Assembly: GCA_009103225.1 (NCBI GenBank)
Contig: RHPI01003009.1
Span: 539,354-603,353, forward strand
Origin: Chlorokybus atmophyticus
Taxonomy: Eukaryota; Plantae; Mesostigma and Chlorokybus algae
Direction of reading: 5' to 3'
Length of the DNA stretch: 64,000 nt
A model generated the notes under the pieces. That model saw nothing but the letters and a program-made list of their open reading frames with translations, had not been told where the DNA came from and ran no database searches. The position numbers and the translations under genes are program-made. Below, one piece after another: positions 15,713-22,862 of this stretch; within the stretch, counting starts at the first letter, position 1; each line of letters opens with the position of its first letter.

Positions 15713-16618
15713 TTAGCTGTGCCTGGGCGTCGATGTTCTCATCTCCGCATCCTCACCGTCATCCTCATAATCATCTTCGTCGTCCTCTCCGTCTTCATCG
15801 CTCACATCCGAATCACCATCCGCAGCTGTCCAACTGTTTCCTTCTGCATGTACTAGTCTGCCAGGTGGCAGAGGAGGCCTGCCGATACTTGGCATGCCTT
15901 CTGCAACTTCCTGTGCTCTATCGACTTGCTCTTGACGCAAACGTGCAGACTCCGCCACGGTTATGCTGGCCACCATACGCGGAACAGAGCCTGCTGCCCG
16001 CACCGCAGCGTTGGCAGTAGACATTGCATGATGGACACCAATTTCCTGCATAGAGCTCATATTGCGTGAGACAAGGGGTAAATTATTGTGCATGTGGCTC
16101 ACAAGACAATGTTCTGCACCCCACGTTGCAAGTCTGCCCACCTGAGCTTGTTGCATGACTGCATCTGCTGGACCTTGTCGACTGCGTTGCACTGGGTCCA
16201 ATGGCTCCAACGTGCCGTGTCGCAACCGAATGCCCTGTTTTGCAAAGTGACGCTCGCGTGCCGATTGTATGGGCAGTTCCACCAGAGCTCTTTGTCGCAG
16301 CTGCACTGAGGCTGCTGTGCTGCTTATTGTGACTTCCTGCAACGCTGATGCCAGGCTGCTTGTCGCTGAAGCCTCAACAGCACGGCGCAGCTCAGCAATC
16401 CTTTGCTCGATCTACCATGCCCCATGCAACTTAGCAAACACACTACCAGCCATGCAACATGGCACGACTAGGAGTGGCCAACTGACCTTCCTGCCATCAT
16501 CAGGAACGCGTAGCTGCCCTGACCTTACTTGCTCTAACAGTTTCAGCTGTTGTGAGAGCAGTGACTCGGCGCTGGCGGAAGCACGTCTGCTCGATGCGAG
16601 TTCTTTGGCGGCCGCCAT
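15713..16618 (-). CDS. 244-aa protein with Gdown1/POLR2M (GCOM2)-like motifs
   Basis: Exons 16618-16487, 16411-16142, 16045-15713 join in frame; motifs LLSQQLKLLEQ..RVPDDGRKIEQRIAELRRA, LASALQEVTIS, SITVAESARLRQEQ, acidic C-terminus. The CDS is well supported; the family call is tentative. Confidence 0.7.
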
Positions 16619-16651
16619 GCATGCAGTCAATGTGGGTAGCTCGTTGCAGTA

Positions 16652-17030
16652 TCACAAGTCGTCATATGACACATGCTTTTTTACTTTGCACCCTGGTGAG
16701 TTCGGATCTTCCGCACCACAACAGTCGAAGAACTTTGCAGGCCAGCCTTCAGCGTCCTCGCACTCGTAATACTTCTTGCCTTCAGGATGGTACCGGCAAA
16801 CGTACATTCCAGGATGAATTCTGCATACCATGAGACCAGATATAGGTGACCAACATTGTTTTCTTACGCCCCGCAACAGATGGCCTTAAAGCGCAGCTAT
16901 TTCGATCACTCCCGCTTGCTGAACGTTACAGACTTGCATGTTACCTGCAAACGCCGTTAGAGTTGCTGCTATCAGAGTAGTGGGTCTTGCATTGACGACA
17001 AATCTTAGTGTCAGCGCCAGTGCTTGCCAT
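16652..17030 (-). CDS. 84-aa Cys/His-rich (BTK/CHORD-like) putative zinc-binding protein resembling a conserved uncharacterised plant family
   Basis: Exons 17030-16945 and 16820-16652: MASTGADTKICRQCKTHYSDSSNSNGVCRIHPGMYVCRYHPEGKKYYE..AKFFDCCGAEDPNSPGCKVKKHVSYDDL*. Confidence 0.85.
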
Positions 17031-18001
17031 GTCTGCATTGCCCACGCGACTTGTATGTCGACAACAGAAAAACGCCAGGCAAGTGATTATTTGCAGCCCA
17101 GCTGGTCGCACAAAGGCATGCAGTTTGGGGTTTGAGGGTGGCAGGCTAAAGTAGGGAAAGAGGATGGCAAACAACAGGCATTTGCAGTGAGCGACGAAAC
17201 AGACTGATTCTGCGGAAGAAAGTTTACAACATTACAAGAATTGAACAATAAATGTTGTAATCAACGCACAGCTGACTACGTGTGTATAGATGAGCTTGCT
17301 GCACATGCACAATCGCTAAACGGCAAAACACGTTACCCGTTAGCCAGCCCTCATGTTAGCTGAATTTCCCATAGCGTGCGGAAACGCTTGCTCAAGCACA
17401 CAGCGCACCCTACGAGACTACCTCCTCGACGTAGACGCTACCACCAACGCCACCACCAACACTGCCGCCGCTGCCGCCACCACCAGTCAGGCCTTCCGCC
17501 GGCCAAGGGAATTATTCAACGCTGCCGTCCTTGAAACCCCGGTAGCCACTTGTTTAGAGGATTCGAGGCAAACCACGTTACATTGTAAGGAACTCGTCGC
17601 TTTCGGGGCGTTCTGTCGGGGCGCGGCTTTCCCGCCAATTTGCTGGCTTCTTGGGGATGAACCCCAGTCCTCAATATTTCTCCAGGACTGAGTGCCCCAG
17701 TGGCTTGGCTTTGCTGCCTGCTTTGCCTGCCGTCTCTGCTGTTTGCTCCGCTCGCTGCTCTTCTCTGCGGTTGCCTTGCCTTTTGGGCAGGCTTGGCCTG
17801 GTTGTTTTGGGGGTCAAAACCCTAGCTGGGAGGCGTGGTGCGTTGTCAGCGGCGGTAGGCGGCGCTGGTCTGGCCTTGCAAGGCGTTGCTAGGGGTGCTG
17901 TTGGTTGGATCGGTCTGTCTTTGCTCATGTGGCGTGGTTGGTGAGGAGTGAGGCGGCCTTACGCACTGATCTCTCTTGACGCTAGAACTGGGTTGGTCAG
18001 G

Positions 18002-22862
<4,861 letters not shown>

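Follow-up and report, generated by a model that had tools for sequence, protein, structure and literature searches.

A candidate divergent Gdown1/POLR2M-like protein encoded by a nuclear gene of Chlorokybus, a streptophyte alga

Here we report a three-exon nuclear gene of Chlorokybus, a streptophyte alga, located at positions 16618-15713 (minus strand) of the window, by which we mean the entire stretch of 64,000 nucleotides analysed (contig RHPI01003009.1, positions 539,354 to 603,353 of the forward strand). The protein encoded by this gene, ORF B, is probably a very divergent relative of Gdown1/POLR2M (GCOM2), or at least a protein that is functionally alike. An earlier note on this DNA, made from its letters alone, had proposed a Gdown1 homolog. 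That proposal gains from a blind feature search of the ESM Atlas and from weak but collinear profile matches of an N-terminal region, a C-terminal region and the tail, but Pfam was negative and sequence searches found no relative.

The translations of the three exons agree, residue for residue, with the JGI Chlat1 model Chrsp51S06542 of 244 amino acids, hereafter P0001 (Table 1). The searches described below were carried out with ORF B as the database protein P0001, and with ORF A, a short ORF located upstream on the same strand, exon by exon. The four motifs that had been quoted from this DNA are real, all of them lying on the minus strand at the places given, and the interval assigned to them is the coding sequence. 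LLSQQLKLLEQ corresponds to P0001 residues 20-30, RVPDDGRK/IEQRIAELRRA is interrupted by intron 1 at the position of the slash, and VASITVAESARLRQEQ represents residues 159-174, reading from 15973 on the minus strand. The C terminus of P0001 is acidic, with D or E at 19 of the last 54 positions.

Table 1. Positions of ORF A, ORF B (P0001) and their parts in the window
Feature	Position	Strand	Description
ORF A exon 1	16945..17030	-	ATG at 17030; CxxC
ORF A intron	16944-16821	-	124 nt, GT..AG; ORF A total 84 aa
ORF A exon 2	16652..16820	-	Cys/His-rich; stop TGA 16654-16652
Spacer, ORF A stop to ORF B start	16619..16651	-	33 nt (11 codons); the ORFs share a frame
ORF B exon 1	16487..16618	-	Codons 1-44, ATG at 16618; ends ...RVPDDGRK; P0001 1-44
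ORF B intron 1	16412..16486	-	75 nt, GT..AG; ends with a stop in frame
ORF B exon 2	16142..16411	-	Codons 45-134; P0001 45-134
ORF B intron 2	16046..16141	-	96 nt, GT..AG; free of stops and in frame; removed in the JGI model (predicted)
ORF B exon 3	15713..16045	-	Codons 135-244 and stop TAA 15715-15713
Residues 15-60 (across intron 1)	16364..16576	-	Helix, VPDDG turn, helix; candidate RPB10-binding region
LASALQEVTIS, residues 64-74	16322..16354	-	Aligned to the GCOM2 segment after the second helix
Residues 159-181	15905..15973	-	Predicted helix; candidate RPB2-protrusion-binding helix
Acidic disordered tail, residues 205-235	15743..15835	-	Contains W and Y

Most of P0001 is predicted to be disordered. 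AF2 single-sequence models, which are of low confidence (pLDDT 62 and 73), contain helices at residues 2-32 and 41-79 that are separated by a loop at 33-40, and a C-terminal helix at 164-184. This predicted secondary structure fits the description of GDOWN1, in which helices surround the LPDKG motif and a further helix is present toward the C terminus (PMC13443923). In human GDOWN1, residues 19-73 constitute the RPB10-binding region and residues 303-344 the protrusion-binding helix, for which L303 and L304 are critical (PMC13443923). The LPDKG motif is identical in all sampled animals except Xenopus, where it reads LPDRG (PMC4007455).

As a source of non-human family members for comparison, metagenome contigs were scanned with a degenerate nucleotide pattern encoding [KR][LF]PDKGxKI, modelled on the LPDKG motif known from the literature (PMC4007455). 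Of the 118 loci recovered, 14 encode GCOM2 proteins. Pfam GCOM2 was applied to eight of these 14 proteins (non-human), with E values from 1.4e-37 to 3.3e-4. Seven were above threshold, namely L081 (1.4e-37), L022 (1.7e-34), L066 (6.6e-32), L006 (1e-15), L090 (8.7e-13), L112 (8.5e-9) and L041 (8.2e-8), and L065 (3.3e-4) fell slightly under it. Four loci from human-gut metagenomes (L049, L097, L105 and L118) are chance matches that do not belong to the GCOM2 set, and those with sufficiently long flanks were used only as negatives in the controls. The comparison between P0001 and the human protein is indirect, by way of non-human GCOM2 profiles that match the PDB chain of human GDOWN1; entries 28jc, 9t5h and 6drd are human structures of Gdown1/POLR2M/GRINL1A. 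These profiles match human GDOWN1 (28jc_M, 9t5h) at residues 13-69 (E 6.8e-13) and also at residues 38-75, and the C-terminal profile matches residues 303-339 (E 4.5e-6). The matched segments 13-69 and 303-339 correspond to the regions that PMC13443923 describes as binding RPB10 and the protrusion, respectively.

Some features of these metagenomic proteins deserve mention in their own right. Two of them, L041:140-1585 (+) and L065:23-895 (-), are of metagenomic or metatranscriptomic origin and have an unusual base composition, with GC3 values of 0.71 and 0.17, respectively. L065 possesses a clear C-terminal IISIEESLEIQ helix followed by a poly-D tail. If non-metazoan, L041 and L065 would by themselves broaden the range of the GCOM2 family. 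In the insect-type GCOM2 proteins L022, L066, L006, L012 and L013, a WEVTAATPP segment is strongly conserved some 10 residues ahead of the C-terminal helix. At this position P0001 has a loose look-alike, AVRAAGSVP (147-155), and a non-collinear SWTAA occurs further on.

An N-domain HMM that retains the upstream helix scored P0001 at 15.0 bits (i-E 1.6e-6), in an alignment of residues 15-60 that accommodates one additional residue in the loop. P0001 ranked first of 20,001 shuffles in this comparison, where the best decoy reached 8.0 bits; an earlier N-domain HMM without the upstream helix had scored P0001 at 7.7 bits. Alignment of the same region by hhalign gave P values of 0.0013, 0.004 and 0.01. 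For the C-terminal motif, which the earlier note had likened to human Gdown1, an hhalign alignment of residues 161-181 with the C-domain profile gives weak support (P 0.031), and the C-domain HMM alone gave p 0.004-0.06. The hhalign probabilities for P0001 are low throughout (1.6-18%).

The matches are arranged along P0001 as they are along GCOM2 proteins. BLASTP against L022 produced two collinear HSPs, at residues 18-69 (E 0.005) and 162-181 (E 0.009), and BLASTP against L041 produced an N-terminal HSP (E 0.003). A full-length HMM built from four GCOM2 proteins aligned residues 11-76, 159-181 and 212-231 of P0001 in order, and P0001 had rank 0 of 20,001 global shuffles and rank 5 of 20,001 region-preserving shuffles. 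Neither this HMM nor BLASTP found a collinear match in P0001 77-158 to the central external-binding region (human 224-255).

In the N-terminal region, the profile mapping pairs V38 of P0001 with human L44, K26 with R33 and Q23 with R30; in the C-terminal region, it pairs I162 with L304, S161 with L303 and E166-S167 with E308-S309. Judged from these alignments, some contact positions named in PMC13443923 appear to be conservatively kept in P0001, with R30 and L303 as exceptions. The segment LASALQEVTIS had been equated with human FIDRLQRITIA, which is probably wrong: LASALQEVTIS aligns to the helix directly after the LPDKG helix, in a segment reading LLSRLNI (human ~70-82), and this alignment is not significant alone. 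In L081, a vertebrate-like GCOM2 exon, the equivalent of FIDRLQRITIA is located far downstream of LPDKG.

A separate line of evidence comes from the ESM Atlas, in which a protein-language-model feature search with P0001 was run blind to the Gdown1 hypothesis. The first-ranked match is a cluster from Euglenozoa that has no Pfam family. It is followed by a Mucoromycota cluster, 11% of whose members carry PF15328 (score 0.89, 189/256 features), and by an arthropod GCOM2 cluster (score 0.86, 177/256 features). Among the 10 best family-bearing matches, six have one family or clan in common. By the tool's own calibration this result is a lead only, because the scores are below 0.9 and the recognition value is 2024 against a threshold of 2300. 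Still, it is unlikely that an unrelated protein would land on the same rare family that had been named beforehand from the letters of the DNA.

The stronger of two rival explanations is that P0001 is an orphan helical and acidic protein specific to its lineage, and that a short PDxGxKI pattern within L/Q/E/R-rich helices, together with an acidic tail of a common type, resembles Gdown1 by chance. We consider this unlikely, and several results speak for it. HMMER with Pfam GCOM2 (PF15328), the check proposed in the earlier note, was negative for whole P0001, its exons and six sub-ranges at E<=10, which in view of the HMMER filters means just that E exceeds roughly 0.1-0.25; the gathering score of this model is 27 bits, and the metagenomic GCOM2 proteins score 21-130 bits in the same scan. 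Since this test was run and failed, P0001 is not classifiable as a member of PF15328. Direct searches for relatives recovered only P0001 itself, whether by word search of the main exon against 5.8 billion proteins, by word search of residues 12-80 or by phmmer against 1.84 billion representative proteins, and no related loci were found in metagenomes. A phmmer search of the PDB with the whole protein and its two halves yielded weak unrelated matches and missed the human GDOWN1 chain, even though it is present there. The AF2 models likewise retrieved only generic helical hairpins in Foldseek searches of the PDB and in the Atlas shape search.

Controls on the motif bear on the same explanation. 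The pattern [LIVM]PD.G.K[LIVM] occurs once in the six frames of the window, in ORF B, and arose in 2 of 300,000 shuffles of P0001. By our estimate, a couple of chance occurrences of so short a pattern are still to be expected in a proteome. When the nine columns of the motif are left out, the flanks of P0001 are not significant by themselves. When the motif is instead kept constant, they add to the match at p 0.001 in global shuffles and at a marginal p 0.011 in shuffles that preserve local composition; over all controls, the contribution of the flanks given the motif lies between p 0.001 and 0.05. We also compared P0001 with 36 natural ORFs that bear the motif by chance, each of which was given the P0001 version of the motif, and one unrelated natural family among them (two ORFs) scored level with P0001. 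L097 and L105, from human-gut metagenomes, form a helical family outside the GCOM2 set with a chance exact KLPDKGRKI; with the GCOM2 N-domain HMMs this family scores 24-26 bits, which warns how far a motif and helices can reach. The candidate was, moreover, selected out of a whole-genome scan, and at proteome scale (by our estimate ~1e4 proteins) the sequence statistics of P0001 alone would not be significant.

What argues against a chance likeness is the agreement between lines of evidence. The blind Atlas search and the guess made in the earlier note converge on the same rare family. Three separate stretches of P0001 align to GCOM2 profiles, collinearly and at similar places along the protein, and the N- and C-domain HMMs each put the ORF B gene at the top among the six-frame ORFs of the window (848 ORFs for the C-domain HMM). 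If the likeness is nevertheless a matter of chance, ORF B would be just an orphan acidic protein.

It is very unlikely that P0001 is instead a different Pol II-associated protein, not descended from Gdown1, with a convergent RPB10 docking motif of the LPDKG type: Gdown1 and TTF2 have a conserved LPDKG in common, through which they compete for Pol II (PMC4007455), and the N-domain score derives mostly from the motif and the helix directly preceding it, but neither a SNF2-type helicase nor any other Pfam domain was found in whole P0001 or its sub-ranges, the C-terminal helix and the tail are also collinear with GCOM2 proteins, and the Atlas features indicate GCOM2, not TTF2.

Taking P0001 as a divergent Gdown1 relative, we infer homology, Pol II binding and a function as follows. 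P0001 would be disordered over most of its length and would contact RNA polymerase II with two short helical modules. If the human cryo-EM structures are taken as a guide, residues ~15-60 would dock on RPB10/RPB3 and residues ~159-184 would lie along the RPB2 protrusion, leaving the acidic tail free. In this position P0001 would block TFIIF/TFIIB sites, and it could also stabilise a cytoplasmic RPB3-RPB10-RPB11-RPB12 subassembly.

Gdown1 is termed metazoan-specific or metazoan-restricted in the literature, cryo-EM studies of 2025-2026 among it (PMC13443923, PMC8887472, bioRxiv 10.64898/2025.12.10.692585), a view repeated in the earlier note, but PF15328-positive proteins are present in the Mucoromycota cluster retrieved from the Atlas. 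Our literature search found no paper on non-animal Gdown1 members. At5g59460 was rejected as a Gdown1-like protein, because it is MPP6. Because PF15328 already occurs in a fungal cluster, only the plant-lineage part of the present result would be new. We tentatively advance the broader view, which we regard as possible, that Gdown1 is an ancient eukaryotic factor for Pol II assembly and repression, not an invention of animals, and that it survives in strongly diverged form in an early-branching streptophyte alga. According to this proposal, the modules that dock on RPB10 and on the protrusion would have been kept and the central module would not. A Gdown1-like protein on the plant side, especially together with the fungal GCOM2 cluster, would then date this layer of control to early eukaryotes and would provide plant biologists with a candidate Pol II assembly/repression factor to seek. 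It would also imply that the indispensable core of Gdown1 consists of the two docking helices.

The same proposal addresses the arrangement of ORF A and ORF B. ORF A may be a zinc-finger microprotein, and ORF B may be translated from an mRNA containing both ORFs or by read-through of the in-frame TGA. Exon 2 of ORF A has a weak, sub-threshold match to the BTK motif (Pfam E 0.0032); a word search with this exon gave no candidate relative and no JGI model, and phmmer gave nothing in the PDB. The start codon of ORF A lies in a strong context (A at -3, G at +4), and there are five ATGs ahead of the ORF B start. If there is one mRNA, reinitiation or read-through is for these reasons likelier than leaky scanning, and the sequence context likewise favours a separate transcript start for ORF B over leaky scanning. 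As the TGA of ORF A is in the frame of ORF B, read-through would fuse the two.

The neighbouring DNA contains a divergent gene with a DDT domain on the plus strand (20106-20375, Pfam E 3.6e-10), which probably starts near 17950. Its first exon looks WAC-like by eye, without confirmation of WAC by Pfam. At about 21100-22000 of the window there is a very long (CT/GA)n dinucleotide repeat, whose translation is poly-(LS)/(SL)/(RE) in every frame. It holds an ambiguous base and may be in the neighbourhood of an assembly gap.

Among known systems, P0001 is most usefully compared with Gdown1 itself. Like Gdown1, P0001 has a predicted N-terminal helix, a (L/V)PDxGxKI turn near residue 40, a helix and a second short helix, and then a predicted C-terminal helix of the form hydrophobic-x-hydrophobic-x-E-S-x-x-L-x-x-E/Q-Q that is followed by an acidic tail; large-scale disorder is a further similarity. 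The order of these parts and their approximate positions agree with insect-type GCOM2 proteins (280-330 aa). Unlike Gdown1, P0001 has VPDDG in place of LPDKG (L to V, K to D), preceded by a loop that is longer by one residue, has Q and S as the equivalents of R30 and L303, and has no recognised external-binding region, NES or CAS. Moreover, P0001 comes from a streptophyte alga, with no relatives detected in other plants or algae, whereas the family described in the literature is restricted to metazoans. With TTF2 (lodestar), P0001 has in common a short putative Pol II docking motif; TTF2, however, is a large SNF2 ATPase, whereas P0001 consists of 244 amino acids and has no enzymatic domain. 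Finally, the location of an 84-amino-acid ORF that ends 33 nt before ORF B on the same strand resembles the arrangement in the polycistronic nuclear mRNAs of green algae.
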